From positions 5,084,001-5,148,000 of the forward strand of contig JBLDXI010000042.1 in NCBI GenBank assembly GCA_047495785.1: DNA of 64,000 nt, in the 5' to 3' direction. This stretch comes from Lepidodermella squamata (lineage: Eukaryota; Animalia; Gastrotricha). Below the pieces are notes generated by a model that saw only the letters and a list, made by a program, of their open reading frames with translations, was not told where the DNA came from and did not search any database. Each line of letters begins with the position of its first letter. Position 1 is the first letter of the stretch. This document shows, piece by piece, positions 935 to 55,780 of the stretch. The position numbers and the translations under genes are program-made.

Positions 935-3830
935 GTTTTCTTCTGGGTTCGGGTCGAGAAATGCAAGATCTCTATTGTGAGCTGTTTCCCTGAGTTCATT
1001 GAAGATTTTATCCGTGTTTTGTTCTGCATTAAGCAAATCCAGCGGTGGCACGCGATGCGAGCTGTTTTTTTCACGAACCATTCGTATGATGATGTTTCGG
1101 AATGCAAACGAATAACCACGAGAATCATCGAAGTCTTTCGGAGGATTGCTTCATAAGTAAGAAGGTAATTCACAAGGCTACATATTAAAAACTTCCATCA
1201 AAACTTACAGTATGATTGCCAGGGTAGAATCAAACTGTACAAATTATTTTCAATAAACTTGAATTCAAAGGAACAGAAATGTCTTACAGGCATGTAGAAA
1301 TTTGCTAATTCGAACAAAGTTACACCCAATGACCACCAGTCGCTTGCCTGAGAGTGATCTTTCCTCTCGAATAATTCCGGAGACTTGTAAAGATTTTCGC
1401 GACTCCCAACCTGTCGATGTTTCTCCCTTGGAGAGCTTTGCGGCACCAATATGACAGTATAGGAAATTGTCAATCCCAAATATCATTACCTTTCGTAAAT
1501 TTTTGCCAACCCGAAACCCCCCAGCTTGACAGACGAGCCGCCATAGAGAAATATATTCTTGGGCTCTATCGCACGATGAAGGATTTCGTTTTCGTGCAGC
1601 ATTGCCACAGCCGACGCAAGCTGCCGGGACCAATCCATCAGCAAATCTTCGGGAATAGGCCCGGCCGATTTCTTCATATAATCATTCAAATTTCCATCGG
1701 AGCAATATTCCATTACAAGATTGTAAATTGCGCCGACAGGACCCATCTCTTCAACAATTAAACCGTTGAAAATATTTTTTCTTCATAGAGATTTTGCGGC
1801 TGACTTACCATCGAATGTCCCGAAAACAGCTACAATGTTAGGGTGCGATAAATTTACTAGTTTCATATCGCTCCTTTTGCCCTATAAAGTAACTCTTCCC
1901 TTTTCCCCACCCATTTTCTGTTGAGAAGGCGAGTTTTTGCCTCATCGCTTAATGCATTATCGCGGCGCGCGGCAGTACTTTTATTGTAAGAATGCGCGGC
2001 TCGTTGCCTTGTATTCTGCAGAATGAATTCATTAGAAAAAGGGTTTATTGCAGTTGTATAGACCGCTTTGCAGAGAATTAAGCAATATATTCGCCAAAAA
2101 ACACTTTTTATGCAAGATAAATTCTCAGATTTTGTTAGTTTTCTCCTTGAAATTCGAAACTTTTGCGATTTTTTGGTTTTTTTCGTTTTCTTAGAATAAT
2201 GAAACCACCAGTTTCTGCCACCGTCAAGGTGTTTGAGAAGGACGTTGGCTTCGAGGAAGTCAAATCCTGGGTGAATAACAATTTCCCATTACTCAGAATA
2301 AAGTTTTCAGGACATTCGGCTGGCAAACGTTACGCATACTACAAATGCGAATATTTCATGAAGCATGGCTTCCTTAGGTGCACGGCGTCAGCGAAAGTCG
2401 TTGAGAACAGCGATGGATCTGTAGCTTTCGTTTCTCAAAATCCACAACATAACCATGAGCAAGATCCCAAAGCGACGAGCAGCAAGTTCTTGCGCATTGA
2501 CCGCACAGCTTCTGCTGTCGTGAACAATTTCCTCAAAGGCTCTAATCCGATTGTCGATCGAGAGCGGCTGCAGTCATCTATCGCACCAAGATACAGATCG
2601 ATGGGTCTGAAGAACCCGCCAGTGCCATCGATAAGTCAATTGAGAAAGGCAATAGCTACACAACGAAAAAAACAGAGAACGAGAAGGCGCCGATTGGAGC
2701 TCCATCAAAATAAGATCCAGATTCCGAACAGTACAGTAACAGTACGCGATACGGATTCCGAAAAACGCGAACCATCATTAACTGCTAACATCCTCTGCGT
2801 GGCATTTCTTGTTTACACCGGCTTTCGCCTCCTGAGCTAATGGGCGACTTCAAAAAAGCAAAGCCTCGAGAGCCCCTAGGGCAGTGACGCAAAACATGCT
2901 GCATGTTAGCATGTTACTTGCCTGTCGAACGTACGCATGCTTCGAGAATGAATCGTTTCAAATTTTTTGATCTGCGCATGACTTCCTGAGTATAGGCTAT
3001 CAATTATCCCCAATGTATCTCAATAAAAGTGCTTCAAGTTATCTTGAAGAGGCACCCGTCCAGTATTTGAAATAATTATGATTCTTGACACAATGCCATC
3101 GAAACCATACAACCCAATTGTGATTGACTGAGCGAGGAATATATTCAAAACTTAGCAGTCAAAACTTCAGTTTTCTGTTCAGCTGGCAAGGGAGTGCACT
3201 ACCGACTACCGAAGGCCTATTTGCCGTGAAACACCCATTGAAAACAACTTTCATTAGGAATTTATGATATTTTAGTTGACTTTCTGCAGAATACCGGGCA
3301 CCAACTGCAAGAAAGCCCGGTTTTTATGCAGAAAGTCTGAATTATTATGCAAGATAACCGCTGCCAAATTGCTCATCATGCATAAAAAATGGAGCGCACG
3401 TGCGATTTTATGCAAGATAACTTATTGATTGCTCGCATCTTATGCGAAATAGTAGGCAACAAGGGTAACGCTTCTGCCATACTTCTGCTGCCCGAGAAAA
3501 AAATTACGCCGCTCGCAAACATATGAATTACTACGGGGCTGTGCTCATACATAGGTTTTTGAAAACGTTCCCTTATAGGGCAAAAGGAGCGATATTCTAT
3601 ACGATAACATCTCAAAAAGGGAATTCTGAGGTATGATACGCAGCTTTACCTCGTCTCGACTTAATTTGATAAGCCGTTCGGCAAAATTAGGTTCTTTGTC
3701 ATAACACCGTTGAATCCGGCCGCGGTTGAAAGTCTTAACAACATAAATTGCGGCGTCTTTGTATCGACTGCACAGTATTGTCTTGCCGAAGGTACCAGCC
3801 TCCAACTCCTTTTCACGTTTGAACTTGTGG
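935..3830 (-). CDS. Pseudokinase domain PK3 of gene A (several exons, transposon inside)
   Basis: ORFs 3545-4108 (GTFGKT..VVK..SRDE), 1486-1746 (LVMEYC..LHRAIEPKN..KLGGFG), 1198-1479 (YKSPE..DWWSLG) and 887-1081, linked by short GT-AG introns. Confidence 0.8.
1869..3591. mobile_element. Non-autonomous TIR DNA transposon inserted in a kinase exon
   Basis: Perfect 19-bp TIRs CGCTCCTTTTGCCCTATAA (1869-1887 and 3573-3591) flanked by ATAT on both sides (1865-1868, 3592-3595). Removing the element restores the exon start NMKLVNLSHPNIV, with the same spacing as in the other three kinase domains. Confidence 0.9.
2199..2840 (+). CDS. Transposon-borne WRKY/FLYWCH (WRKY-GCM1 fold)-like zinc-finger protein with a basic tail
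   Basis: Intact intronless ORF with YYKC-x10-C...HNH, followed by RKKQRTRRRR; AATAAA near 3022. No DDE domain is visible. Confidence 0.65.
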   Translation: MKPPVSATVKVFEKDVGFEEVKSWVNNNFPLLRIKFSGHSAGKRYAYYKCEYFMKHGFLRCTASAKVVENSDGSVAFVSQNPQHNHEQDPKATSSKFLRIDRTASAVVNNFLKGSNPIVDRERLQSSIAPRYRSMGLKNPPVPSISQLRKAIATQRKKQRTRRRRLELHQNKIQIPNSTVTVRDTDSEKREPSLTANILCVAFLVYTGFRLLS

Positions 3831-37065: not shown

Positions 37066-39038
37066 TCATAGGTCATCGTGAACAATGGTGTACCGCATCG
37101 GAGACGGGCCAAGCTTAGCGAACGCAGATTCCGGCGGCTTGATCGTTTCCGCCTTGACAACCTCAGCCTGCTTCAATTTCACCGCCTCTCGCTTGCTCAA
37201 CTTCTTCGTCGCCAGCCCAACCGGTTTCGGCAACATCGGAGTCGTTGATCCGACGATGTCTTCATCTTTTACATTGGCTAGATGCTCTGTTGTAGTCGTT
37301 GTGCTCAGCTCAGTCGTAGTAGTAGGGGCCGGAGCTTCCGTCATGCTTGGTGGGACTTGAGCCGGGGCTGGAGCTGGCTGGTTAATGCTGATAATTTGAA
37401 CCCCGGGCGCGTTATTGTTCTGCTGATCTTGAAACTGCTGTATAGCCTGTTGCATCCGCATTTGTTCAGCTATATGAAAATCCTGATGCAACTTGCCGCT
37501 GATCATGTCTAGCACAAACTGCCGCAGGTGGTATTGATTCGGCTCTTCCAATTTCGCTTTGACATCCGTAGAAGGGAAAACGTACATATGCTTCAAATCG
37601 TCGATAGCAATGACTGGCAAATCGTTGATTGATTTACCAAGTCTTGTCAAAGGATGAGTGAATACGAAGCCATCGGCAATAAGAGCGTTGAGTCCGGTTG
37701 TTTGATCGCCCAGTTGCCGGTCGACTTCTGCCATGTAAGTTTTGATGACGGCTTTATCGTCTGGGTTGTAGAATAGGATTAGCATAGGCAGGCCTTCTTC
37801 TGTTAGGGCTTCGGCATTTTCGAAGGTTATCTCGCGGACTATTGGTCGGCAGTGGGTGTATAGAAATTTGTGGAGAAGGTTCAGATCGTTCAGGTCGTCA
37901 TCGAAGTCGTGCGACTCTTGAGTCTGTTAAAATGTGTGAAAACAACAGTGATTATGTTGCTTCCACGAAGCACTTTATTTCGGAACAAAGTGGCAATTTT
38001 ACCGAAGTAAGCTCGAAACAACCCGATGACAAGAAATTAGCCCTTTTCGGTATGTTTCCTGCATCGACCAACGTCAAGTACTGAATGGTTCATTCGAATT
38101 AAGGAGATAAGTCAAGGATAAATCGCTTTGAGGAGATTTTCCGGCAAATGAAAAAATATGAAAAATTCTCAAACCCCCGAAACCTCTATCCATTTCGAAA
38201 AATACCGAAAATAAGCAATTCAATTACCATTAGAAGGTTTTCTATCGGGGTTTTCTATCTAACCGGGGTTTCTATCAAATTCTGTGGAATCTTTATGCTC
38301 TATATCGTTAAGGGAATTTGCTATGCCCAGTAAAAATCTTCAAGACTTACCATTGGCGAGTAGAAGCGAATCTTGAACGCATCTGTAGCCTTGATGATCT
38401 CCTCAGGCAAGTCATCGCCAACATAAGCATGGAACTTGCATTCATCCCTCAGCGAGATGGCTTGCTTCCGTATGAATTCCAAAACATTCATAGACGAAGC
38501 GTCATCTTTCCTTGAGGCCCTTGCCACAATCGCAATGTGCCTGGCTTTCTCACTGAATTGAAGAATTGACGCAAGATCCGTGGAATATTCGATAGGATCT
38601 TTCAATTGAGCTTCGACGTATTGAGCCAAAGCGTCTGGAGTTCTCGGCCCTCGATACTCCAATCTCGCCGTCGTGCCACTCCGGACTAGTTTAAGAGTTG
38701 GGTATTTGTTAACGCCGTACCGTTGGCAGATACTTGCGCCTTCACCAGGACAATCGACTCGGGTGAAAACAATTCTAGACCCGTCGTACTTTTGAGCTAT
38801 AATATTTGACGCTTCCTCATAGACAGGCGCCAGTTGCCGCGAGTAAGGACACCAGTCTGCGAAGAAGTTCATGAAAACCAGCTCGGATTTTGCCAAAACT
38901 GTTGCAATATTGACTTCCTCCAGCCTCATGATCTCACAGAAAGACAGGCTGATCGATAGGATCTAGGATGGGGAAAAGTCTTAACAACGGTAACCAAGGA
39001 CGCCTAAAGCATACCGAAATCACGGCGAACCTCAGCAT
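37066..39038 (-). CDS. ERP44: ERp44-like ER protein 1 (exons 39038-39015, 38962-38351, 37923-37066); CPYS motif, ends HDDL
   Basis: Signal peptide, FFADWCPYS, RVDC, KYPTLKL, EYRGPR, PIVREITFENAEALTEEGLP, IAIDDLKHMY, SGKLHQDFH, PPESAFAKLGPS..RY. This is the most canonical copy. Confidence 0.92.
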
Positions 39039-39147
39039 GACCAGTGTCTTAGATTTTAAATAAAAACCTAGGAAAAATTCGGAAAATTAAATAGCACATC
39101 TTTAATTTTAAGGAAGACTTTTCGCTTTCATTCAAAATAGATATTTC

Positions 39148-40544
39148 TTATAGTTCATCCCTGGCTTTTGAGTAGCGCAAGTAGGACGGACCCAGTCGAG
39201 CAAAAGCAGACTCAGGCACGTCACGGTATGGCATATTAGCATCAACAAAGTCTGGGACGTTCCTCCCCATTGCCATAGGATTCATTTCTTCAGGAAGCAC
39301 AGCCTTTCCAAGATGAGGCTCCGCCGTAGTCGAATTATCCGCCTCAGCATTTTTTAACGCAGCAGCTTGTTCTGCTGCTTCTTTCTCAGCCTGTAAGGCT
39401 TGTTCATTCGCGTGAAATTCCATATGCAACTGCCCAGAGTACAACTGATGGGCAAATTCGCGAATCAACCCAGGCGTTGCCATTTCTTTAGTTGGCCTAG
39501 GGAAAATGTACATATGCTTGAAGTCGTCGATAGCCAAAACAGGCAGGTCCTTCTCAGTCCGGCCGAGTTGTTTCAGAGGCAGTTTGAACTTGGTTCCATC
39601 AGCGAAAACTGCTTTTATGGCGAAGCGATGGTCTGGGATTTCACGTTCGACGTAGGCAGCATAGTCTTTGATGATGTCGCGGTCCTCGGGGTCGTAGAAA
39701 AGGATAAGGAGGGGAATTCCGCGTTCTGCAATGTGTTCAGCATTATCGAAGGTGATTTCCTCAGTTAACGGAATGCAGTTGTCTTCGACCCAATTTTTCA
39801 GGTCTTCGTAATTCTCGGCATTGCCTGGGAACTCGATGTGCCTCTCCTTAACCTGGATTGATGAAAAAGGACGCAACGGATTATCAAAGAAATCTGAGGA
39901 TGACTTACCTCAGGCCATGTGAAACGGAACTTATACGGGGCATTGCCCATCAAATCTCGATCTTCTCCTGTTAGTATCCCGACGAAAGCGTGAAATCTGC
40001 AGTCATCTCTATGCTGATAAGCTATATCCTCCAAATTTTTCAGGGCTCGTTGCGTAGGGTCGGCAAGATTATGGTCAGGCTGAATCATCATAGTTACATG
40101 GCGTTCATTTTCAGTCAGGTCTAATAACTGATCGTAGTAGTCAAGGTAGTCGATAGGGTACGTGCGCTCCTTCTCAAAGTATTTTTTGAACGCTTCGACA
40201 GTTCTAGCGCCTTTGTACTCGAGTCTAGCGAGGAGGCCACGGCGGAATAGCCGCAAAGTAGGGTATTTATCTACGTTAACTTGCTGGCACCACGGTCGCC
40301 CGCCCTCTTCGCAATTCACCCGAGCAAGGCGGACGTTGGACATGTTGGGCATTTTGGCGAGTTGATTTGCGGTTTCTTCGAAGATTGGCACCAAATTTTG
40401 GCTGTGGATGCACCAGTTGGCGTAGAAATTGACCAGTGTTAGGTCGAAGTCTTTAATGACTTCCGGCGTGCTGATTTCTAGCACGGCGCTTTCAGCGAGG
40501 GCAAGCGGCGATGCTAGCAGCAGAAGAACGGAAGCTGCCAACAT
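39148..40544 (-). CDS. ERP44: ERp44-like ER protein 2 (exons 40544-39909 and 39852-39148); CIHS motif, ends RDEL
   Basis: Signal peptide, NFYANWCIHS, KYPTLRL, EITFDNAE, AIDDFKHMY, PESAFARLGPS; 56-nt phase-0 intron. Confidence 0.92.
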
Positions 40545-42449
40545 TTGGATGCGAAAATAATGATGGCAAATGGGTATTTTTTATAATATTTCAGCTAAAT
40601 ACAAACTAAAACCTGAAACGAGACGAGCAATATATATAAATATCTAAAAATTCAAAGTTATGATTCATCTCGAGAAAACCTGAAAATTCCGTCAAATAAA
40701 AATAAGGGATACTCATAGAGAACAGAAGTACAAGAGAGGAAACTCACGCTGGAAACTTGAAACATTAATTCGAAGCGGTTTTTTTAAGCCGGATCTTTTT
40801 ACAAAATGCGTGTAATTTTTTAGCGCACTTTTCTCGCGCAAACCCACAAAATTTCGGCAAAGCTTTTCTCCGGCTGTACTACTTCAAATCGGATTCCCCT
40901 TTTTATGGTGAATAGACCTGGTCTTGAACTTCAAAATTGCAAAAGGTTAGGTAAATATATGTGCATATATGCAACGGCTAAGTAAGAAGTACAGAAGTAC
41001 AGAAGTGGTTTGCCAGATGAAGATTTTACAACAAAAGGATATCACCGAATGACGAATTTGCCGCTTGGGAACGGATATTTCCACGCCCATTACGTGAAAA
41101 AGTGGGTGTTACTCCAACACTTCCTAAAAATTTGCTATTGCGTATACGGACCCGCCCCTTTGGGGTTAAGTAGTTTAAAGCATTTTCTATCTCCATGCAA
41201 AAATTTATTTAAATCGGCGACACACCGTTCGACGAAAAAATTCGTTGAAAATGAGCTATTTTTGCGAAATTTTTCGCTGAATTCGCCTTATCTTAGTGCG
41301 AGCAACAGCTAATAATTATGAATCATTGCTGCATTTTTTGCATGGTGATGATTTATAATTTGTGCAAAAAGATCACACCAAGATTATTAGGAATACTTCC
41401 AAATGTGTATAGAAATAAAAAAATCGGAATCGATCTAGATATCGGGACAATATTGACGTGAAATATCCCATGCTTCCGAAAATCAGCAATCATTTATCAA
41501 CCAGCCATTTCCCAATTTTTCTAGTCCAAAAGCGCAGGGCACAGTGACACAAGCCTTTTGGTTGACATTTATAGCGCATACTCCAGCGGATATACTACAT
41601 AGCGCTTAACATCCAGAAACATCTCTCTATGTGTGTATGTCGCAACAGAACGCGTGAAAAAGTCAAGACGTAATAAAAGCGCGACAATAGCCACAGCTCA
41701 ACACAGTGCCCCGAAATTGCACAACAATAATACGCGCTCAGGACTCAGAACAAGCGCACATCTGCATCCTTAGTACTAGCGCGCAGTGTTTTTTGGAAAC
41801 AAAAGACACATATAAAGGTAGCAGACCCATAGCTGCTTTGCCTTATGCGCAGAAACCACCACCACTGCAAGACCTCGGCATTAGCTAGCAGGTAGTATGC
41901 TAGGTAGGTATAGAATCAATAACAATGCACGCCGGCTGTGGTCTACGTATTCACGTATGCATGTTCATTATTATTACACTGTAAAAAGCGTTTTATACTA
42001 TTAAGATATGCCACGTGGCACGTTTTGCGGCCTGGTCACACTGCTAGAATTAATTTGTATCTCAAAGAATTATTGGGTGAAATCTTACACGATTTCCTCT
42101 CTCCGATAAAACTGCCGATAATTGATCTGGTTCGGGAAAGAAAAATGTGTCTCCCAGAAAGTTCAATTCAAACAATAGGCGTAGTTTCGAAAAAATGTTG
42201 GTGCGAAAATGATAAAGACTTAAAATCTGAATCTGGCCGGTGCCTGGTTGCCTGGCAACCGCATATTAGCCCTGGTGAGAACATTTTGTCGAGTAGCTAA
42301 AACCTAGGGTGTCTAGAAGGCTGTCGTATGGTATGCCATTGTCATTCATGCGTGTGGCCTTCTCGAATTTTCATTCATCACCAAATTTAACGCACCAAAT
42401 TGCAGGGAAAGAAAAACACTGGAAATGAATGACAATTTTATTGATTTCC

Positions 42450-43631
42450 TTAGAGTTCCTCAATTTCTCTGAATGAATATTTCTTATCAGACGGTTCATA
42501 TCGCTTAAAGCGGGATTCCGGAACCGGCAATTTGCCATCCAGAACTTTCAGTGTTTGTTGATGCAGCGATCCAGAGTAGTAGCCATACGAAAGCTTGCGA
42601 AGAGCCGAATCTCGCGACATTTCGGAGACAGAATCCGGTAAAAGGTATAAATGCTTGAAGTCATCCAAAGCTAAAAACGGGAGGTCATCAATTGTTTTCC
42701 CCAACTTCTCCAGAGCTGTTTTAAACTTTGTCCCATCAGCGTAAACAGCTTTCAACGACCTTCGATAGTCACCTAAATCTTTCTTCACAGTTTTGATGAA
42801 ATTCTTGACGGTTTTTTGATCGTTGGGTTGGTGGAATAGGATCAGAAGTGGAATCTTCTCCTCTGCAAACATCTCAGCATTGGCCTTAGTGATTTGTTGA
42901 GCGAGAGGGACGCAGTGATTCTCAGCCCACGGACGGAACTCGTCAATATCCCCGGCGTGATCTTCAAACTCGACAAAAGCATCTTCGTAAGACCGATCAA
43001 GGAAAAGAACTTTGTAGTTCGAGTCGCCGATCGTATCCTGAGGCATATCGTCACCAATGTAAGTCACAAAACGGCAATCATCAGATAACCACGATCCTAA
43101 TTCGTTCAAATTCGCTAGAACGTTATCGGCCGCTCCAGATTTTCGATACTTCCCCGTAATCAAAGTTACGACATAACGATTTTTCGCGTCCAAAGCTTCG
43201 ATTTCATCGAGGCTTTTCGCGATTTTGACCGGGCTCTCCAAATGGTGGTTCACATACTTCTTCAAAGGCTCGACCTCACGCTTCCCAATGTAGTCCCTTC
43301 GAATTGGTTTGCCTTTTCGGAAAATTTTGAGAGTAGGAAGCTTTTTGATCTGGAATTCATCGCAGAGAGCCATGCCATCATAACGGCCGCCATTTTCGTC
43401 GCAATCAACCTCGGCGAAGGTTATTTTTTGCTCCTCGGCGTAAAATTCAGCCAGCTCTTCGAAAACAGGAGCCAATTTCTGGCTGTGCTCGCATCGCTTC
43501 GAGTAGAACTTGACAAAAATTAAATCTTTGCTGTTGAGTTGATGAAAAGTTTCGCCGCCTGTCCTCACAACACTGGAAGCTTTCACCAAGGTTAAACTAA
43601 TGGTTAATAATAAATAAAAGAAGCTTCGCAT
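42450..43631 (-). CDS. ERP44: ERp44-like ER protein 3 (single exon); CEHS motif, ends IEEL
   Basis: Single ORF with signal peptide MRSFFYLLLTISLTLVKA, KFYSKRCEHS, KLPTLKIF, IPLLILFH, ALDDFKHLY, PESRFKRYEPS. Confidence 0.9.
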   Translation of the reverse strand: MRSFFYLLLTISLTLVKASSVVRTGGETFHQLNSKDLIFVKFYSKRCEHSQKLAPVFEELAEFYAEEQKITFAEVDCDENGGRYDGMALCDEFQIKKLPTLKIFRKGKPIRRDYIGKREVEPLKKYVNHHLESPVKIAKSLDEIEALDAKNRYVVTLITGKYRKSGAADNVLANLNELGSWLSDDCRFVTYIGDDMPQDTIGDSNYKVLFLDRSYEDAFVEFEDHAGDIDEFRPWAENHCVPLAQQITKANAEMFAEEKIPLLILFHQPNDQKTVKNFIKTVKKDLGDYRRSLKAVYADGTKFKTALEKLGKTIDDLPFLALDDFKHLYLLPDSVSEMSRDSALRKLSYGYYSGSLHQQTLKVLDGKLPVPESRFKRYEPSDKKYSFREIEEL

Positions 43632-43845
43632 CTTAATGTATGAAAGGTAAAACAATAACAGTCCATTGAAGCATCGCTTTGTTTATTGTTTTGATGTTTT
43701 TAATTACTGAGCTAGTGCACTGGTTGATGATCTTGAACTCACGAAAAAAACATGCAAATAATCTCGAAAATTCGTTTATTCTCGATACTTCCGATGGAAT
43801 GAAAGATTTTGAAAGGAGCATTCTAATTTCAAGTGATTGCAAGAT

Positions 43846-45202
43846 TTAAAGCTCATCACCATCACGCCTAACAATTGTGTATCGCTGTTCATTAGGTTTA
43901 AATTCTTTGAAGATAGACTCAGGTACTGTTGTTGGAATTGATGGCGCTACAGCTGTTACTGTTCCATCATCCTCTATGATGTACTTTTTCTTGACGGGAA
44001 CTCCCCGCGCGCCTCGAATCGCCGCCTCCTTTTCCTCTACAACCTTCTTCTCAAGCTCGTGGAATTCGTTGTGCAGCTTCCCGTTGTAGAGGTCGAAAAC
44101 AAAAGAGCGCAGAGGCCAATGCGGGGCCTCGAATTTTTCGACCAAAGTTGGGAAATTATACATATGCTTGAAGTCATCAATCGCAATCACCGGCAAATCA
44201 TCCACTGTTTTGCCCAACTTCGCTAAAGGTTCAGGAAATTCAGTTCCATCAGCGTAGACTATCTTAATGTTGTATCGGTGATCCGGCAATTGTGTTCGAA
44301 TTGCTTTACCAAAGCGGAGAACGATGTCTCTATCCTTAGCAGGGTCGTAGAACAAGATGAGGAGCGGAATTCCACGCTCTGTGATACGTTCAGCATTTTC
44401 ATAGGTCATTTCCTCCACCAATGGGTTGCAATTATGCTCGGGCCACCATCTTATCGTATCGTTCTCCAATTCCTCCGGACCGATCTCTAACGATTCTTCG
44501 AGCTGAAATATTTAGAACATATTCACAATAAATCAAATTATGCTGTAGACAGCCTCTTACCACTTTGTACATGTATTTTAGTTTATAAGGCTGGTGGCTG
44601 CCTAAAACGTTTCGCGGCATATCATCGCCGACGTAATAGTGGAACTTGCAGTAGTCGCGAAGGGTTTCGCTGTATTTTTCGATCTCTTGAAATACTTTTT
44701 TCCCAGCTTCAGTTTCCATAGCTCCTTTCCTCATCAGCAGCACAAGATGGCGTTCCTTGTCGTCGAATTTCGCAACCTCAGTGTAGCTCGAGGCTTGTTC
44801 GAACTTGTGAAGAGCGACTTCTTTGAGGTACTTCTTCAACGCCTCCACAGTTCGATCGCCTTTGTACTCTATCTTAGCCCATTCACCCTTGTACCACAGC
44901 CTGATAGTTGGGTATTTTTCGACTGCCATTTGTCGGCAGAATTCCGCGCCGTCTTTATCGCAGGCAACTCGGGCAAGTCGGATCTCTGCCATATCCGGGT
45001 CATTTGCGATTTCGCTAGCTGTTGCCTCGTAAATTGGCGCCAATCGTTGGCTGTGGATGCACCAGTCAACGGCGAAATTGAACAGAACTGTTTTATATGG
45101 GTGGACGGTGTGCATGCCCCATGCATCGATGACTTTGCCAGGTTCGTGAGCCGACGTGACGGCGATAAGCAGTGCAAAGCCGAGCAAACTCCGCAAAATC
45201 AT
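43846..45202 (-). CDS. ERP44: ERp44-like ER protein 4 (exons 45202-44561 and 44502-43846); CIHS motif, ends GDEL
   Basis: Signal peptide, FAVDWCIHS, KYPTIRL, EMTYENAE, IAIDDFKHMY, GKLHNEFH; 58-nt intron at the shared position. Confidence 0.92.
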
Positions 45203-46474
45203 TATGTTAACGTCGTAAAATAGAGTGATGATGCACTAGGATGAATTTTTACGCTATGTTATTATATTTACTGGCTATTCATATTTTTAAAGTGTGCGTG
45301 GCGCCCCTCATGCTTACTGCTTACGTGGCATGTTATTAGAGTTGTAAAACGTAAAAAAAGAAATTAGGAGGTCGCTCCTTGAGAAAAACGGCCAAGGATT
45401 TTTCTAGAATAGTGGCATCTCGATTCTTGATTTATGTAGTGTGAAACAAGTTAAGAAATAGGTCGAATTTCCCAAGCTGAATGTATATAGCTGCTATGGC
45501 TTTATCCCTGGTTACCTTAAAAATGCAGAGTCATAGTGACATTTAATTGGCTTGATTCATCACATCTATTTTCATATTAGCAAGGATGGATCGCATTTGA
45601 AGATGATGTCTTGAAAATTGCACAGATTTACAAAGCATTTAGGTACACATTAATTTTAGTGCCGAAAAATCGGAAAGTCGACAATGACGTAAGTAATCCA
45701 ATTCAAGAGGACAGTTTATAACGAGCTGCTATGTATGGGACCTTGATGCTTTTTCAAGGAAAAAGAGAAGGAGAGTGTACAAAGGACAGGAGAGACCATT
45801 GGTCGAATAATTTAGAATTAAGAAAATAATGATTGCAATTTTATCCCTAGCGATTTTCATTCACAGCGACGTCGGGATAGAATCCAAGACAACACTTGCA
45901 ACCTTGAGCAAATTGCTGCGGGTGAAAGTATAAAGGATAAATTCTAGGGATGGTTGCTAAAATACTACCGTTTTACTCCCCAATAATTGACATTAGTTTT
46001 TGGTTATAAGATTCAAAGAGAAGCTGCACTGGCGAAAAGCTGGTTAGTTGATTAGCCCCGTAGCTGTTTACTGTTTATCTTTTTATCGTGTATGTGTGTA
46101 TATGACTCGCGGTGCCTTTTGCAGCCATAAAATGTGAATTAAAAAATAGCGGATATCAAAAGCGAACGCAGCTCCTATAATGATGTTCGAGGTTTTGGAT
46201 AGTTCTCCGTTCTCCAGATCCTTCATCGAAAATTGAAAAATAAGTGAGCTTTAGATCAAAGTACCAAAGACATCTCTAAAATCAGCTATCATCCAAATTT
46301 TCCGTATCAAACTTGATGAGCAAAATGAACGCAAATACGATAATCAACAGCCCTTTATTGGAGTAGGACGAAAATAATCTCAATTTTCCCGACGGTCCAA
46401 CGTCAAATGTACATTCAAGCAGTGCAGATTGAAAGAATCAATTTTACAGGGTATTATATTATGAAATAACTTGC

Positions 46475-47827
46475 TTAGAGCTCATCATCGTGTCTAATAA
46501 AGGTGTATTTGTCTTCTGAAGGCTTTAGTTCTCTGAACGTTGACTGAGGCACTGATGTGAGCACAGTAGGCTGAACTTCAGTCACAGTTCCATCCTCCTC
46601 AACCTTATACTTCTTCTTCACAGCGACACCTCTCGCACCTCGAATGGCAGCCTGTTGTTCTTCCAGAAGTCTTTTTTCATTCTCATGGAATTGCTCATGT
46701 AACCTGCCGTTGTGGAGGTCGTAAACAAAGGTTAGAAGAGACCAATGTTCATCGAATTTGTCGACCAACTTCGGGAAGTTGTACATATGTTTGAAGTCAT
46801 CGATCGCAAGCACCGGCAAATCGTCCACAGTTTTGCCCAGCTTTTCCAACGGCTTTGTAAATTTAGTTCCATCAGCGTAGACCGCTTTAACCGCCCATCG
46901 TTCATTATGTAACTGCCTTCGAACTTCTGCGGAGAAGCGAAGCAGGATTTCGGGGTCTTTAGGGTTGTAGAAGAGGATCAGTAGAGGGATTCCGCGTTCT
47001 GTAATCTGCTCGGCATTTTCGTAGTTGATTTCCTCTAGCAATGGATTACAATGTTGCTCCAGCCAAGGTTTCATCGTTTCGTTGTTCAACTCTTCAGCGC
47101 CAATTTCAAAAGATTCCTTGAGCTGAAAGATTATGAGCGAAAAATATTGAAATGGAGATCTAAATCAGTATTAAACTACACTTACCACATGGTACTGATA
47201 CACGATTTTGTGCGGCTGATGACTGCTTAGCATGTCCTTGGGTATATCGTTGCCAACGTAGAAATGGAATTTACAGAAATCCCGTAGAATTTCACTTTGT
47301 GTTTGCACCGCTGCAAATAGAAGTCTGCCCTCATCTTTTTCAATACTGGACAATCGCATTAACAGAATAATGTGCCGATCAGTATCTTCAAATTTCGCGA
47401 CTTCTTCCGGCTTGAAGGCCTGTTGAAACGTGTGGATAGCTACGTTGCTAAGGTATTGCTTAATTGCCTCGACAGCTCGATCGCCTTTATACTCCAACTT
47501 AGCCCATTCGCCTTTGAAGTATAGCCTGATTGTAGGGTATTTATTCACTAGTAACTGCCGGCATAACGGCGCGCCTCCTTTATCGCAAGAAACACGAGCG
47601 AGCCGAAATGAGTCGAACTTTGAATCGTATGACATCTCGCGGGCTGCTTCGTCGAAAATCGGTGCCAGTTTGCGGCTATGATGGCACCACTCCGCGACGA
47701 AACTCACCAGCACGATTCGATAGGCTGACAGCTGTGACTCGTCGCTAATTTCGATTACTGAACCCGGCGGCTCGCTTGCCATAGCGAATTGCACAGCTGC
47801 AAACCCAAAAAGGCTTAGCAAGAGCAT
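46475..47827 (-). CDS. ERP44: ERp44-like ER protein 5 (exons 47827-47186 and 47122-46475); CHHS motif, ends DDEL
   Basis: Signal peptide, FVAEWCHHS, KYPTIRL, EINYENAE, LAIDDFKHMY; closest to copy 4. An alternative in-frame ATG lies at 47854. Confidence 0.92.
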
Positions 47828-48350
47828 TTCAAAGATTCCTGGTTCTAAAAACATTGGAAAACATTTGTTACTTGGAAGCCTATACTAATCGCTCACAAAA
47901 TGCTTCATCGGCTGAGGCTAACTGTGAGAGGCAGAGAGTATCAAAGCCTAAAAGAAGGCTGTTATTCTTAGACCCCTATCAAAATTCAGAAGCAGACGGG
48001 CATAGGTACCCATCTGAAATTGGAGGTAGGGATAATCAGCGCAATCACACAGACTAGAAGTCGACAAATTCATCCCAACTTAATCCACATTCACAACTAG
48101 ACGAAAAACATGAATAGCCGGTGGGTGAAATGATGATGTTTAATTGTGGGTCAGGAAATGTCTCCATTTCTCGATCCTGCGCAAAAGAACAGCATAAAAC
48201 CGGCTAATAATTCGCAATTAAGTTGCAAATTAGTTGCAATTGGGATGTGGGATGTGGCGATTACATTCTAGAAAATAACCGGCTGAATTCCGAGATCTGG
48301 TGCTTCCGCACGCTGCAAAGCACGGTTTCGTGATTTTGAAAGAAGCGCGC

Positions 48351-48358
48351 TGACGTGG
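48351..48358 (+). promoter_or_regulatory. Candidate unfolded-protein-response element (TGACGTGG) about 520 bp above ERp44-like copy 5
   Basis: Exact match to the XBP1/ATF6-type UPRE octamer. A short motif, so a chance match is possible. Confidence 0.35.
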
Positions 48359-48599
48359 CGCGTGACGAGATCAAGGGTTACAGCCGCCTATTAATATAAA
48401 TAGCGTCCCTAATATACGTCATTAAGAACAATGGCTTGTCATGCCAAACGTGACGTCGCATGCTGCAAAGGATGCACTCCACATAACAGATTAGCGTAGT
48501 TTTTTACTACGACGTAATAAGTAATAAGGATTAATTGTTACGCGTTTTTTTGGTTCCAGAATCTTCCGAAGAACATAAATTGTGAGAATCTGATTTTAT

Positions 48600-50146
48600 T
48601 CATAGCTCATCCTTGTGCCTGTTCAAAAGAGTGTATCTTTCAGCAGACGGGCCGAGTTTGACAATTTCCGATTTAGCCACTTCATTTGGTACCATAGGTG
48701 CCACATCAGTAACGGAGCCATTTGCATCAACCGAGTATTTCTTCTTCATAGGAACACCACGAGCTCCGATGTAGACTTCATCTTTTCGCTGCTGGAGTTT
48801 TTTCTCATTCTCGTGAAATTCTTTATGCAATTTTCCCGAGTAAAGATCGTGGGAGAACGTCCGAAGGGCCCATTCCTCGCCCATTTCTTCCACAGGCCTC
48901 GGAAAATTGTACATATGCTCGAAATCATCAATGACCAAAATTGGCAGATCTTCGGTAGTGCGGCCCAATTTCTTGAGAGCTGAGCTAAATTGTGTACCAT
49001 CGGCGTAAACAGCTTTTAAAGAGTATCGCTCGTCGAAAAGCTGTTTGCTAACTTCCAGCGCGTATTTCTTCACAATTTCACGGTCTTCTGGGTTGTGAAA
49101 CAGGATGAGAAGCGGCGTGCCGAGTTCAGCGATTCGTTCTGCGTTGTCGGGATTGAGTTCTTCCACTAAGGGTACGCAGAAATTTTCGATCCATGTGTTG
49201 AGTTGCGTTTCGTTCTCCGCATCGCCAGGGAACTCCGTAAAGGCGTCATTCAGCTATACAAAATTGGGAAATCGACATGCTTACAATTATTTGCTAACTT
49301 TTTGAATAGAGGAATAGTGAAGTGGTAAGTGGTCATTTTCAAATTGCTATTTTTCTATATAGAATCAATTCAAAGTACAAAATGAAATCGACCTTTGAAG
49401 TAAACATCGATAGATTATAAACTTTGAGAGAACTCACAGCTGAATTGATGTGTCTGATCAAGTAGCCCCTATCGCCGGTCGTGTACTTGGGGATATCATC
49501 ACCATAATACGCGTGAAAGTCACAATCCTCACGAAACTTCTCGGACAGTGCCTCCAATTTCGAAATAACCGATTTCGCAACTTCGCTCTCTCGCTTTTCA
49601 GGCCGCATTGTCAGCACCACGTGCCGTTTTTTGGTTCCGGAGAAGTCTGAAATTTCGGCGAGAGACTTGGCCTCAAGAAATGGAGGCCTCAGGTGCAGAT
49701 CAACGTAATCGCGGAAAGCAGCAACCATACGCTCACCTTTGAACTCATGAAGAACTGGCTCGCCTCGTCTGAATAGCCGAATTGTGGGCAATTTCGTGAT
49801 TTTCAAGTTTTCGCACATCAGCTTGCCGTTATGGCCGCTTTCCTCTTCACAGTCGACCTTGGCAAAGAAAAGCCGGTTTGCCCTCATCAGGTTTGCCGAT
49901 AAGAAAACAGCTCCTTCTTCGAAAGTTGGCCTCATCACGTGGCTATGTGGGCAAAGTTGAGCATAGAAGTAGATCAAAACTAGTTCTTTATCCCTCATAA
50001 ATTCATGGCGATCTGTTTCGCCGATTTGCGTGACTTCGGCAGCCAAAATCGACGAGAAAAATAATCCTAATAAAATGCCCTGCAAGAGAAGGAGTGGGGT
50101 CCGAGGAATTCCAGATAAGACTTCGGGAAAAACTCACACTGAACAT
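48600..50146 (-). CDS. ERP44: ERp44-like ER protein 6 (exons 50146-50138, 50079-49438, 49253-48600); CPHS motif, ends KDEL
   Basis: Signal peptide MFS|GILLGLFFSSILA, YFYAQLCPHS, AKVDC, KLPTIRL, VIDDFEHMY, SGKLHKEFH, KLGPSAERY. Confidence 0.9.
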
Positions 50147-50484: not shown

Positions 50485-52582
50485 TTAGCCCAGTCGCTTC
50501 TTCTTGCGACAGAACCGAACTATTACGAGCGAAGCTTGTTGGAATTGGCGAGGGGTGAGGATTTTCATAACAGCTGTCAAGCACATTTCAATATTCAACA
50601 ACAACATGGCTGTACTATGTAAGCGATGCGTCCCGATTATCGGGCCGAAACTATGGGGGAAACTTTCGGCAAAAAAAGCGATACCAAGCGGCAGGTGGCA
50701 TATCGAGTTGATTGTAAACGCTACCAGAGATTGTTGAGCGAAGAAAAATTCACGATGGCGCCACGAAGAGTCATCTGAGCATGTTTGCAAGCTAATTGAT
50801 GCTAACAGGCTCGCGTTGACTCGTTGCATTTTCTTGAAAATCGCCCAGTAATTCATGGCAAGAACTGAAGACGTTGAAAGGACTGCAAAAGAGTAGTAGA
50901 TGAATAGTAGGGCTGAGGTGTTGAAATATTCGGTGAGCTTGTAGTCAAACGCTCCACAAAGGTGTATGTATCTTGAATTGTCCACGGGTAGTGCCTGATG
51001 GCCCAGAATGCTGTATGGATAGACAGTTAATACCGTCGACAAGGAACCGCAGAGCATAAAGCCGAAAGCAACAGTGATCGAAAGCTGTAACACACAAAAG
51101 CACTGGATTAAGAAAAGAGAATAGCAAGAACTCTATTCCACCTCAGGCTTACATTCTCACTTCGGTTTAATGACCCAAACTTTCAAACGGAAACACGCTG
51201 CAAGGGAAAATCAACCGGGGATTCCAAATCTAAACAAGGCTGAGATTCTGATTCTCTTAATTCTTCAAATGCTGAGCTATCATGAGCAGGACTTCGGCAC
51301 GTAACTCTCATCAGCATTTTGGACTGAAATAATTTCGAATAATATATGCTTTCGCTGGTTATGTGTTTCACGCAATTACATAGTTAGGTTAAGATTGCAT
51401 AATATCGATCGAGATACACCAAGTGGCCAAATCGATTCAGATGCGACATGTATCGATTTATTGCATACGTCTGAAGACAGCTAAATTACTGCGCAATTCT
51501 CTCTCTCTCTCTAATTCAATTTCCCTAACCCGATGTCGGCTGTGTTATGACAGCGTGTAACTGTTGGTCATTTCTACGTCACGCACTGTTACACTTGTCG
51601 AGAGAAATTAGGGATAAAGAGGATAATAGCAATAACGCGGAACTCTGTAATCTAGAAATACCCCCTTCCGTTTATAACGAATGCAGATAATTGGGTCATT
51701 TCTCCTAACCTCAGAAGAGACAAATCGCTGCTGTTACCTATAATGACTTTTGTTTGGAATAAACTGAATACCGTGTTTCAATGAATAACAGCCTTCAAGA
51801 ATTTGAACTTTGAACATTAAAATAAGATAGGAACATATCGCGACTTCCGCGCCAGAACAGTGTGCCGGAAATAGAAACAAATGGCGTAATGCATTTGATG
51901 CGGAGAGAAAACTGGCGTCCAACTTTTTTTCTCGCGATCAGGCACGCGACTGACTTGGCGAAGATGCAAAAAGTTAGTTTTACGCCATTTGTTTCTATTT
52001 CCGGCACACTGTTCTGGCGCGGAAGTCGCGATATGGATAGGGAATAGGGTATCAGCTTTCAGCTATTGAAACCTGTTTTCTTTTTAAGCGGAGTGCGTCG
52101 AAGCCGAGACAAACCTTGAGCAGACTGGATCTGTAGTTAGGAGAGTCCGATAGCGCTCGAAGCCGTCGCTCGTAACTGATAATCCTATTCATGTAACACC
52201 CGAAAGGCCCAATCGCTAAGGCTACCCACATTGAAGAGCGGCAAAAACCAGCGTTGAAATTGCCATCGTGCAGCGTTACCAGAAAACCGAACGCGAAATT
52301 AAAGGCCAGCAAAGCGTTGCGCAGGTCATAAATCGCGTTCAGAACAAAAAACTCGCGCTTTACGCCTCGTTTGATATAAACGCCCAGGCTTCCTAACGCT
52401 GATAGAATGATGAATATTGGCGATATCAGAAATGGCAAGCTGTATGCCAGGCGGTCGCTGACTGTTTGAGCAGTTAGATCCGTATACCATATGAAATACG
52501 GCCTGGGTTCATTGTAACCTCGGCCAGATATATTCACCAGTATCCAAGCTCCGTTTATAACGTATGCAACTGATCTATTCAT
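50485..52582 (-). CDS. Divergent class A (rhodopsin)-like 7TM receptor, about 355 aa (exons 52582-52115 and 51084-50485)
   Basis: Seven hydrophobic segments, N-terminal NxS sites, Cys before TM3, DRY-like SYERR, Cys in ECL2, CHLP in TM6, basic tail; phase-0 GT-AG intron. Confidence 0.75.
51839..52030. mobile_element. MITE with CG termini flanked by ATAT, copy 2 (GPCR intron)
   Basis: Inverted copy of 14804-14997; ATAT at 51835-51838 and 52031-52034. Confidence 0.9.
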
Positions 52583-54604
52583 CAAATCGCCTTGAAAATT
52601 AGTGAAATGTCGCGTAAATTGAATTCGCTTTGCCACATTTTAAATTCGATTATCATCTCTTTTCTTCTTGAAAGAATTGCTAAGGTACTCAATTATCGGA
52701 CTAATAATGTCACTTCACCTAATAATATGTCGTCCTTTATCGAGTCCGTTTGAAATCTTCGCGCAAAGCAATCTTCGCTAAATTAAACTTCAGCGGACAT
52801 GATTACCTTGCAATCAGAAACAGTCCATTTGTCATTTGAAAATCTGCTAACGAACATGGGATGAAAATACGTCAGGCGTAGATGTTTCGGAACTATCCCA
52901 TCGTCAATGCAGCGTAACGGAGAAAAATAGGGCGTGGGCTCTCAGTTTTCGACCGCTTCGGAATCCGAGCCAAATCTTCTGCAAAAATAAAAATCTGGAT
53001 CTCTATTCTCGCGAATTTAATAATTTCAGGATCCCGTGAGCCGAATTACTGACATGCAGCTCCTCTCTTCAAAACTCAATTTCGTGAGTCCTAGTTTTCA
53101 GTTCGCAATGTTTGGTTAATATGAAACATTATAGCTCTTATCCACAAACTAACTTCGGAGAGGGTGTCTCCGGAGACGGAGCATGCAAGTTCCGAATACT
53201 CAAGCGAAACCTTGGGGCAATTGAGCCGTGCGAAGTTTCTATTTTTGGCGGGCTGAAGATTTCGAGCGCGCAAAATTGAGCAGGTAGACCTAGGGTTTGC
53301 AATTGTTTCAATTAGACTTGAATCCTCAAAATTCCTACATAATAGGATGCGAAATGAGGCGACAAGACGCATGAGGCAAAATTTCGACGCGAAATTTAAC
53401 ATTTTTCAGAATAATTAAAAAATAATTACCAATAATAACTGAATCATTCTTCGAACCCGCACTAAAAGCTAACATTTTTATTGTAACCCGGTAATTTGTA
53501 TTTCGGATTTATTGGTGAAAGGAAGGATATTTTACTGCGCGCGTTTCATATGCTAGAAATGTACGTCATTATAGTCAGTTACAATCAAAATTACGAATCA
53601 ACGATGCCACGTGAACATTTAATCGATGTCGTCGCCCTAACTCGCGCGTTCGAATGTCCACGCGCGCGTGTGTATGCAGTAACTTCGGACGCGCACAAAT
53701 TTCGGTTCGGAGAGCAGTTGTCGGAATCAGTTGTCGGGGCATAGTTTCACTAATATGAATATATTCATGAGATGTCGTGAAAGCAGGACATTCTTATTTG
53801 AGTGCCTAAAATGGCAGGAAAATTTGAGCACTTAGAATGAGGTTACAAAAAGTCAAAACTTATTTTTCCGGAATTTTTCTGACATAATTATCAATTATCA
53901 ACTTTGAGGGCTTTGGAATATTAATTAGCACCTTATGAATATTCATATTTTTAAAACTATTAAAACTTCTTTTGGTCTGTCCGACTTTTTATTGTTAGCT
54001 GCGCTTGACACATACTTGGAGCAAAAAATAGTTCGGGCGCGTGTGAGACATTTTTAGTTTCAACTCAACAAATTCCTAACCGTGCGTAACTTTTGAATCT
54101 CGCTGTATCGAAGACGAAAACTTTGCACACGTCTCTGAATCAGTTTGAGAGCGTAACCAAGTGTTCCCGTGTTCCCGGTAATGCAGTGTTGCTCAGCCAC
54201 AACACGTTCTGAATAACATCATCTCTTTCCATGGATTTTTCATCGAATAAATGTCATTATTTAAAACGTTTCATTCACATGTTTATTCGGCTTTGCGCGA
54301 TACCAACGGCTAATAGCTAGCATGAAACTAGATCAATAGCGCTGAGTATCAATTTTAATTATTTCTATATTTCTTTTCATTTTACCTTCAGCGGTGATAA
54401 CAACATGATGATTGACAGACACTCCCTGCTCAACGAGCTTCGAGGTTTGCGCGCAACGGCATAATTCAGTGGGAGAGCCGTCTGCGTTCGCAAGGAGACA
54501 TCTCCAAGTCGTACCGTGCTCTAGGTCGAATCACACCCTTCCGCATAAGGAAAACAAAAAAATTGTCTCCGCAAAAAGTATATTAGGAAAAGTCCGCCCG
54601 AGAA

Positions 54605-55780
54605 ATGCGCATGGCTGCATTGCTTTTCGCTCTGCTTTCTCTTGGGGTGCCCTCAGCCACTGGCCAGTCATTGATGAGCTCCTTCGAGAAATGGGTCAGT
54701 AAGCCTGAGCTGAATAACATGCTGCCAGCTACGTTGCCGCCGTACTATGATCAGCAGATCAATTCAAAAACTGAATGCATGTCTCACTGCACAAGAAACG
54801 CGAGTTGCAGCAGTTTGGCTTACAGCGAGTCGAAGCGAGTGTGCAAACTGTACAGCCATCTCGGCTTGGTTACACCCCTGCCGAAACTGAAGCTGGATCT
54901 AGGTCAAGGCCATAAAATGTACTATCGAGTACGTATTGCGTCATACTAAGCCATTAGCCATATTAGCCATTAGCCACTGGCAGAATAAACATTAATTTTC
55001 TATTATTCCTTTGAAAGGGTCATTTCTGCCCGCCTGGTTGGATATCAGACAACGATAGCGACCGTTGTTACCTACTGCAGAGTGAAACATTGTGGCGGCA
55101 ATATTCCTGGAAGGTTTGCGACGAAAACTTTCAGTCGGAACTAGCCACCTTCCAGAACGTCGACCAGCGGCGTCGGCTCTACCAGGTAATTCGGAAATCT
55201 TTTGAACCTATTACAATCGCCTTTCTTCAGATTCTGAAGAACAACGCTCCGTCGAATTCGACCAACTGGTGGACTGGCTATGCTTCATTCGCTGCAAACG
55301 TCTGGCCACGGCCTGTTCAGGAGATCAAGGGCTACCTCAAACGCAAGGGCAATGTGGGCGATGACTTTTTGACCCTCAATAATGTTAAAGGTCCCAAGGA
55401 ATGCGCCAGCATGTGCGATCGTGTCTATCGTGACAGTTGTGTTGCCTTCGCCTACATCCGCCGTGATAACTACTGTACTCTAAAATCATCTTCTTACAAC
55501 GGACCGGGTACCTCGGTCGATGTCGACGTGTGGACGTATGAAAAAATTCGTGGCAGGCCTACCGCACGGCGTCCCAATTTGAAAGTAAACTCTGCTTCTG
55601 GTAACTGCTTCGATGGACAAGCTGGTAATGCTTTGACGCTTCAGAAATGCGCGGATAGTTGTAAGGCAACGCGCGGCAGGTGCGTGACTTACCAATTTCC
55701 CAGACCGGCATTTAGGCTGCAGAACAACGCCGAACACAGGGGTTGAAAATGTCTGCTGAACAAAGGGGTGAAATCGAATT
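54605..55780 (+). pseudogene. Secreted PAN/apple + C-type lectin-like protein, interrupted by TGA (55744-55746) and a MITE
   Basis: Signal peptide; PAN1 (ECMSHCTRNASCSSLAY..CKLY); CTLD start (CPPGW..CY..C..LATF..WWTGY); PAN2 (ECASMCD..CVAFAY..CTLK); PAN3 (KCADSC..CVTY..*KCLL). Introns at 54929-55017 and about 55186-55230. Confidence 0.75.

Follow-up and report, generated by a model that had tools for sequence, protein, structure and literature searches.

ERp44 is a thiol-dependent retention chaperone of the early secretory pathway. It is normally encoded by a single gene, and both its choice of clients and its cycling between the endoplasmic reticulum (ER) and the Golgi are set by the active-site cysteine, by a C-terminal tail under zinc and pH control, and by an RDEL retrieval signal. 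In human ERp44, the histidines of zinc site 2, His277 and His281, bridge a zinc dimer (PMC6363758). In human cells, the KDEL receptor gatekeeper residues Asp50 and Glu117 exclude the C-termini DDEL and ADEL, and proteins with either end are mostly secreted (PMC8248988). Here we describe six tandem ERp44-like genes of the gastrotrich Lepidodermella squamata, located at 37066-50146 of a 64,000-nucleotide stretch of contig JBLDXI010000042.1 (positions 5,084,001 to 5,148,000, forward strand; assembly GCA_047495785.1), which is called the window below. The genes are named g1 to g6 by increasing coordinate (Table 1). The array most probably represents an old tandem expansion of ERp44 that is specific to this lineage, and its members are most likely sub-functionalised ERp44s, a reading to which we give a probability of roughly 0.8.

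Family assignment of the array genes

An earlier note on this DNA had listed six same-strand, ERp44-like genes without stops or frameshifts. Both the open reading frame (ORF) listing and a tblastn search with g3, the intronless copy, returned six such loci, all on the minus strand, and tblastn across the window found no seventh ERp44 copy or fragment. All frames are open after removal of one or two short phase-0 introns, the splice sites of which were enumerated and scored against g3.

Pfam matches to Thioredoxin (E 1e-11 to 1e-17) and Thioredoxin_6 were obtained in the proteins scanned, with g6 entered without its C-terminal exon. Against the PDB, g3 matched human ERp44 best (1.8e-45), followed by TXNDC5 (2.9e-30) and PDI (about 7e-20), and the alignment with human ERp44 spans residues 39-371 of the 401-residue translation of the g3 ORF. 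An AlphaFold2 model of g3, the one copy modelled, had a mean predicted local distance difference test score (pLDDT) of 90.2. Its top eight Foldseek matches were all human ERp44 (E 4e-33 to 1e-26), yeast PDI coming next (1e-21), with template modelling scores to the ERp44 structures of 0.6-0.8. The N-terminus is hydrophobic in all six proteins (maximum Kyte-Doolittle mean over 10 residues, 2.4-3.0), which fits a signal peptide, those of g1 and g6 being supplied by predicted mini-exons. Each protein has a single thioredoxin a domain with a CxxS motif (Table 1), and b and b' thioredoxin-like domains are supported by the Thioredoxin_6 matches, the alignment with human ERp44 and the g3 model. The PDB match, the g3 fold and the trees described below thus agree on the ERp44-like identity that had been proposed.

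Genome-wide copies and phylogeny

A six-frame search of the 121-Mb assembly revealed two further ERp44 genes, on contigs C56 and C3, giving a total of eight. The C56 gene (L002 1228-2562, minus strand) is one long open frame, with 40-48% identity to the ERp44s of molluscs and brachiopods and 36-45% identity to the array genes. It answers the question, raised earlier, of whether a canonical ERp44 with CRFS exists elsewhere in the genome: one is present, with CHFS as its motif and RDEL at its end. The C3 gene (G000:C3:410768-422333) has CFYS and REEL and contains an intron of ~10.3 kb at the conserved position of the main intron of the array genes. Ero1 is single-copy in the whole assembly and KDEL receptor genes number two, so that the eight ERp44 genes did not arise from genome duplication.

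In a first tree (IQ-TREE, LG+C20 PMSF), the eight genes formed one clade (99/100) inside metazoan ERp44, and the ERp44 clade was separated from PDI outgroups at 100/99. A second tree included a metagenome relative, represented by two halves of a canonical ERp44 (ENA contigs ERZ27333047 and ERZ23486787) that are 83% and 66% identical to the C56 protein, or 75% when joined. The gene of this relative (L032/L033 2268-3654) retains, at 2937-3000, the main intron that was lost from C56. With the relative added, the clade was recovered at 100/100, PDI outgroups again split off (100/100), the relative grouped with C56 and C3 at 99/94, and g2-g6 formed a group at 100/96. This placement implies that the canonical and array lineages had already separated when the metagenome relative diverged. 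The lineage-specific character of the expansion, claimed before any tree was available, was borne out in every tree built. An additional cysteine following the Cys63 equivalent and a short b-domain insertion occur in all eight genes and in none of the other aligned ERp44s, which supports monophyly independently of the trees.

The Brachionus ERp44 fell outside the eight-gene clade, and the assembly contains neither COX1 nor a mitochondrial contig. Nematode ERp44s were the nearest outside group in the second tree, at only 83-87; a link to Trichinella/Trichuris seen with FastTree had not been resolved in the first IQ-TREE tree, and this nematode affinity may be long-branch attraction. Branches were longest for g3 (2.1-2.2), intermediate for g1, g2 and g6 (1.0-1.3) and short for C56 (0.14-0.32).

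A profile search spanning 1.84 billion representatives brought up nothing nearer to the array than ordinary ERp44s; a Mytilus cluster scored highest among the full-length matches (356 bits). The two metagenome halves of a canonical ERp44 also came from this search. An exon-level profile search likewise returned nothing closer than ordinary ERp44s, with identity to exon 2 of g4 never above 49%, and a scan of JGI metagenomes with array-specific peptide patterns gave no match. A word-indexed search with g3 found four distant PDIs only, which reflects the sensitivity limit of that index and is no sign of novelty.

Divergence and selection

The six array proteins are 34-58% identical in pairwise comparisons. 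Among their genes, the proportion of nonsynonymous differences (pN) is 0.25-0.47 versus 0.71-0.84 for synonymous ones (pS), the latter being saturated. The youngest pair, g4 and g5, has a nonsynonymous rate (dN) of 0.30 and a synonymous rate (dS) of 2.25, that is, an omega (dN/dS) of about 0.13, a rough value that is nonetheless not near 1. The pairwise check that had been suggested for a selected expansion therefore points to purifying selection. When the assembly was compared with DNA run X2, the g4 coding sequence (CDS) showed two differences, both synonymous, and the adjacent 952 nt of intergenic DNA showed 16. The copies are old and constrained.

Functional residues and a possible division of labour

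Functional residues of the human zinc-bound protein (PMC6363758) were placed onto the alignment by way of PDB numbering. Each mature array protein has exactly five cysteines, namely the CxxS cysteine, the equivalent of Cys63 together with the new cysteine, and the equivalents of Cys160 and Cys212. Of these, the active-site cysteine alone has no obvious partner, an arrangement that fits two disulfide pairs plus a trapping cysteine. In the cluster that forms zinc site 1 and the pH switch, none of the six proteins lacks His299 or His328, and five have His332. Zinc site 2 has fared differently: His277 and His281 are kept in C56 and C3, g1 has His277 only, and both are lost in g2-g6. Outside the human protein in which it was studied, this site is not family-defining. 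The C-tail motif (P)PES-F..L.PS..RY aligns in all six, starting as PPES in g1, VPES or VPQS in g2-g5 and VAKS in g6. Ahead of the tail, g4-g6 have a conserved basic insert, GARGV..KKKY..G(T/S)VT, and the linker of g1 is Thr/Pro-rich and about 100 residues long.

From these residues, the lone CxxS cysteine would be expected to hold clients in a mixed disulfide that it cannot resolve, while the C-tail would cap the active site and the histidine cluster would work a zinc/pH switch. The copies have diverged in the parts concerned with client choice and trafficking, namely the two residues within CxxS, the site-2 histidines, the linker that precedes the tail and the tetrapeptide at the end. The array ERp44s most likely differ in the clients they capture or in how far along the ER-Golgi route they act, and the slow-evolving C56 copy probably retains the ancestral housekeeping role.

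The genome offers eight natural ERp44 variants. The trapping cysteine and the switch histidines are nearly constant among them, and variation falls on the dipeptide within CxxS, the histidines for dimerisation, the linker ahead of the tail and the retrieval tetrapeptide. The eight constitute a ready-made panel for asking which element decides client choice and which the reach along the secretory route.

Transcription of the array

Complementary DNA (cDNA) was available from a 2015 run, X1, which carries the SMART adapter in loose ends and has no tissue or library description. The stretch compared with this run took in g4 to g6 and part of g3. In g4, precisely 44503-44560 is missing from a cDNA contig of 1332 nt that continues past the stop codon. 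In g5, precisely 47123-47185 is missing from the cDNA contigs, which include the stop codon. Over g3, at 43500-43582, lies a contig of 430 nt with a depth of 16, its remaining letters passing beyond the edge of the compared stretch, and g6 has trace cDNA at a depth of about 1 (48525-48926). At least g3, g4 and g5 are therefore transcribed.

Retrieval signals

The C-terminal tetrapeptides of g1 to g6 are HDDL, RDEL, IEEL, GDEL, DDEL and KDEL. An ER-retrieval signal had been attributed to every copy, and this holds for the canonical ends of g2 and g6 and could plausibly hold for that of g1; the ends of g3-g5 lack the basic residue at position -4. The stop codons that follow GDEL and DDEL are confirmed by cDNA. 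Both KDEL receptor genes of the genome (G000:C38:885137-885614 and 503420-503929) keep RYLDLF, with Asp50, and E..WTFS, with Glu117 and Trp120, and have Val or Thr where the human receptor has Asn54. Other ER proteins of the genome end in RDEL, REEL or KEEL, with a basic residue at -4. Because the -4 residue of g3, g4 and g5 is not basic, the receptors keep their gatekeepers and the other ER proteins are basic at -4, it is reasonable to expect that these three proteins are poorly retrieved.

They could, going one step further, have left the KDEL-receptor loop to act as thiol traps at later stages of the Golgi or secretory route, or extracellularly, with g2, g6 and perhaps g1 still cycling between ER and Golgi. 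We hold this tentatively, as a possibility with the odds somewhat against it. In its favour are the cDNA-confirmed ends, the gatekeepers and Trp120 in both receptors, the basic -4 residues elsewhere in the genome, and the rejection of ADEL and DDEL by human receptors of this kind (PMC8248988). On the other hand, those human data cover neither GDEL nor IEEL, position 54 of the receptors is Val or Thr instead of Asn, DDEL is in use in some yeasts, and retention of human ERp44 depends on the tail and the histidine cluster too, beyond RDEL. Such a reading of the g3-g5 tails refines the explanation by sub-functionalised ERp44s and is compatible with it. A still more specific proposal, in which g3-g5 would serve beyond the ER as a tier of their own for thiol-mediated quality control or for escorting clients (late Golgi, secretory granules or extracellular space) and the array would give graded retention depths, seems doubtful to us; if true, it would be a tier not described for ERp44.

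Alternative explanations

The thioredoxin domain matches TXNDC5 and PDI as well, and the genes might on that ground be placed in another PDI subfamily (ERp46/TXNDC5, ERp57 or PDI) and their products be taken for oxidoreductases. This candidate was rejected and is almost certainly wrong, given CxxS instead of CxxC, a single a domain, a full-length match and a fold that are both best to ERp44, and PDI outgroups that split off at 100/99-100. The long array branches beside that of the canonical copy (2.1-2.2 for g3 versus 0.14-0.32 for C56) would also be expected of redundant duplicates drifting neutrally towards pseudogenes, but six frames that stay intact despite synonymous saturation, the conserved five cysteines, histidines and tail motif, the low omega of g4-g5, the expression of g3-g5 and the exclusively synonymous differences in g4 make such drift very improbable. 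It was also proposed in the earlier note that the expansion serves one specialised secretory gland making disulfide-rich products. No client genes were identified beside the array, and the sole cDNA run, X1, carries no tissue or library label and is thus uninformative on tissue; we consider the gland hypothesis unlikely.

The explanation by an old expansion of sub-functionalised ERp44s has to accommodate several observations that weigh against it. The copy on the longest branch, g3, is without His332, and confidence in the model of its tail, the shortest of the six, is low (block means of pLDDT 46-69 across the final 40 residues). In the second tree, all six array genes were monophyletic at only 88/71, and both the age of the array and the scope of the term lineage-specific are bounded by a single metagenome contig. 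Only a few pairs escape saturation at synonymous sites, which makes the omega values rough. Finally, RNA support for g6 amounts to a trace, and the gene models of g1 and g2 are predictions.

Gene structure, trans-splicing and neighbouring sequences

The main intron occupies the same position in five of the six array genes, g3 being intronless (Table 1). Main introns are 56-427 nt long, with the ends GTAAGT or GTGAGT...(T)CAG or TAG, the shortest being that of g2 (56 nt, GTAAGT..CAG), and all array introns are phase 0. The start codon and the first signal-peptide residues of g1 and g6 come from the predicted 5' mini-exons.

Table 1. Coordinates and main traits of the array genes and of the g5 trans-splice acceptor (positions in the window).
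Feature	Position	Strand	Exons	Protein (aa, amino acids)	Active site	C-terminus	Remarks
g1	37066..39038	-	39015-39038 (predicted mini-exon), 38351-38962, 37066-37923	497	CPYS	HDDL	splice sites predicted only
g2	39148..40544	-	39909-40544, 39148-39852	446	CIHS	RDEL	intron predicted only
g3	42450..43631	-	intronless	393	CEHS	IEEL	partial cDNA coverage
g4	43846..45202	-	44561-45202, 43846-44502	432	CIHS	GDEL	intron and stop cDNA-confirmed
g5	46475..47844	-	47186-47844 (CDS 47186-47827), 46475-47122	429	CHHS	DDEL	intron and stop cDNA-confirmed
g6	48600..50146	-	50138-50146 (predicted mini-exon), 49438-50079, 48600-49253	434	CPHS	KDEL	
g5 trans-splice acceptor AG	47845..47846	-					joins spliced leader ending ..ATTTGTGTCTAAG; exon begins 47844 after TTTTTAG

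One g5 cDNA contig departs from the genome at 47846, and its departing letters, in mRNA sense, are ATTTGTGTCTA(AG). This leader string has no copy in the window; in the genome it occurs 72 times, as compared with 4 for a control, and its copies are often in tandem, in units of roughly 650-700 bp with the consensus ..CCATCTGCGAATTnTAATTTGTGTCTAAG|GTATGT (tandem loci at G000:C9:4116481-4120980 and G000:C17:1137307-1142014). Because the departing letters recur in this way, often in tandem and followed by GTATGT, the g5 transcript is trans-spliced to a spliced leader. The junction lies at 47845/47844, and the true start of g5 is thus 47827. The candidate leader had no match in Rfam or in the literature. 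Some leader copies (G000:C2:993644, C4:652785 and C7:4113113) are without a GT donor and are followed by unrelated sequence; these may be retro-copied, leader-bearing cDNAs.

A gap of 109 nt (39039-39147) separates the g2 stop from the g1 ATG downstream of it, and one of 214 nt (43632-43845) separates the g4 stop from the g3 ATG. Given a trans-splicing organism, these gaps look like operon spacing. In the first gap, ~30 nt before the g1 start codon (about 39070-39078), there is an acceptor-like TTTTCCTAG preceded by AATTAAA. Over the 3' untranslated region of g5 and its last 48 codons (46125-46622), the DNA and cDNA runs contain two haplotypes about 5-6% apart. At 50485-52636 and 54605-55746 there are two multi-pass, seven-transmembrane-like ORFs without a Pfam match, beside the array, and, further on, two ORFs for secreted proteins with PAN/Apple domains.

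Comparison with known ERp44 proteins

Human ERp44 (TXNDC4; PDB 2R2J, 5GU6 and 5XWM) shares with the array proteins the signal peptide, the a domain with CxxS, the b and b' domains, Cys160 and Cys212, the His299/His328/His332 cluster (complete in five of the six), the (P)PES..F..L.PS..RY tail and an end of the xDEL type. Its identity to the g3 model is 27-28%. Unlike the human protein, which has CRFS, the array has CPYS, CIHS, CEHS, CHHS and CPHS, as well as an extra cysteine that probably pairs with the Cys63 equivalent, and it lacks Cys272 and Cys289. Both site-2 histidines have been lost in g2-g6, new linkers occur in g4-g6 and in g1, and only two of the six tails are canonical.

The closest relatives within the genome itself are the C56 and C3 ERp44s, which belong to the same clade as the array (99-100) and have the same extra cysteine and b-domain insertion, C3 also sharing the position of the main intron. 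Unlike the array genes, C56 evolves slowly and has kept His277/His281, PPES and RDEL.

Literature searches returned no report of an ERp44 paralog array or expansion, of a six-gene tandem array, or of the loss of basic -4 residues. The earlier description of the array as an undescribed system was still too strong, as what has expanded here is a set of paralogs of a known chaperone, and the nematode genes erp-44.1/.2/.3 had already been annotated. These nematode paralogs (C. elegans erp-44.1/.2/.3; C06A6.5) are an earlier example of an invertebrate with multiple ERp44 genes. In the second tree, nematode ERp44s formed two separate groups that were not interleaved with the L. squamata clade, and the duplications in the two lineages are thus independent. 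The array is best regarded as useful comparative material for ER proteostasis, and not as a new kind of system.

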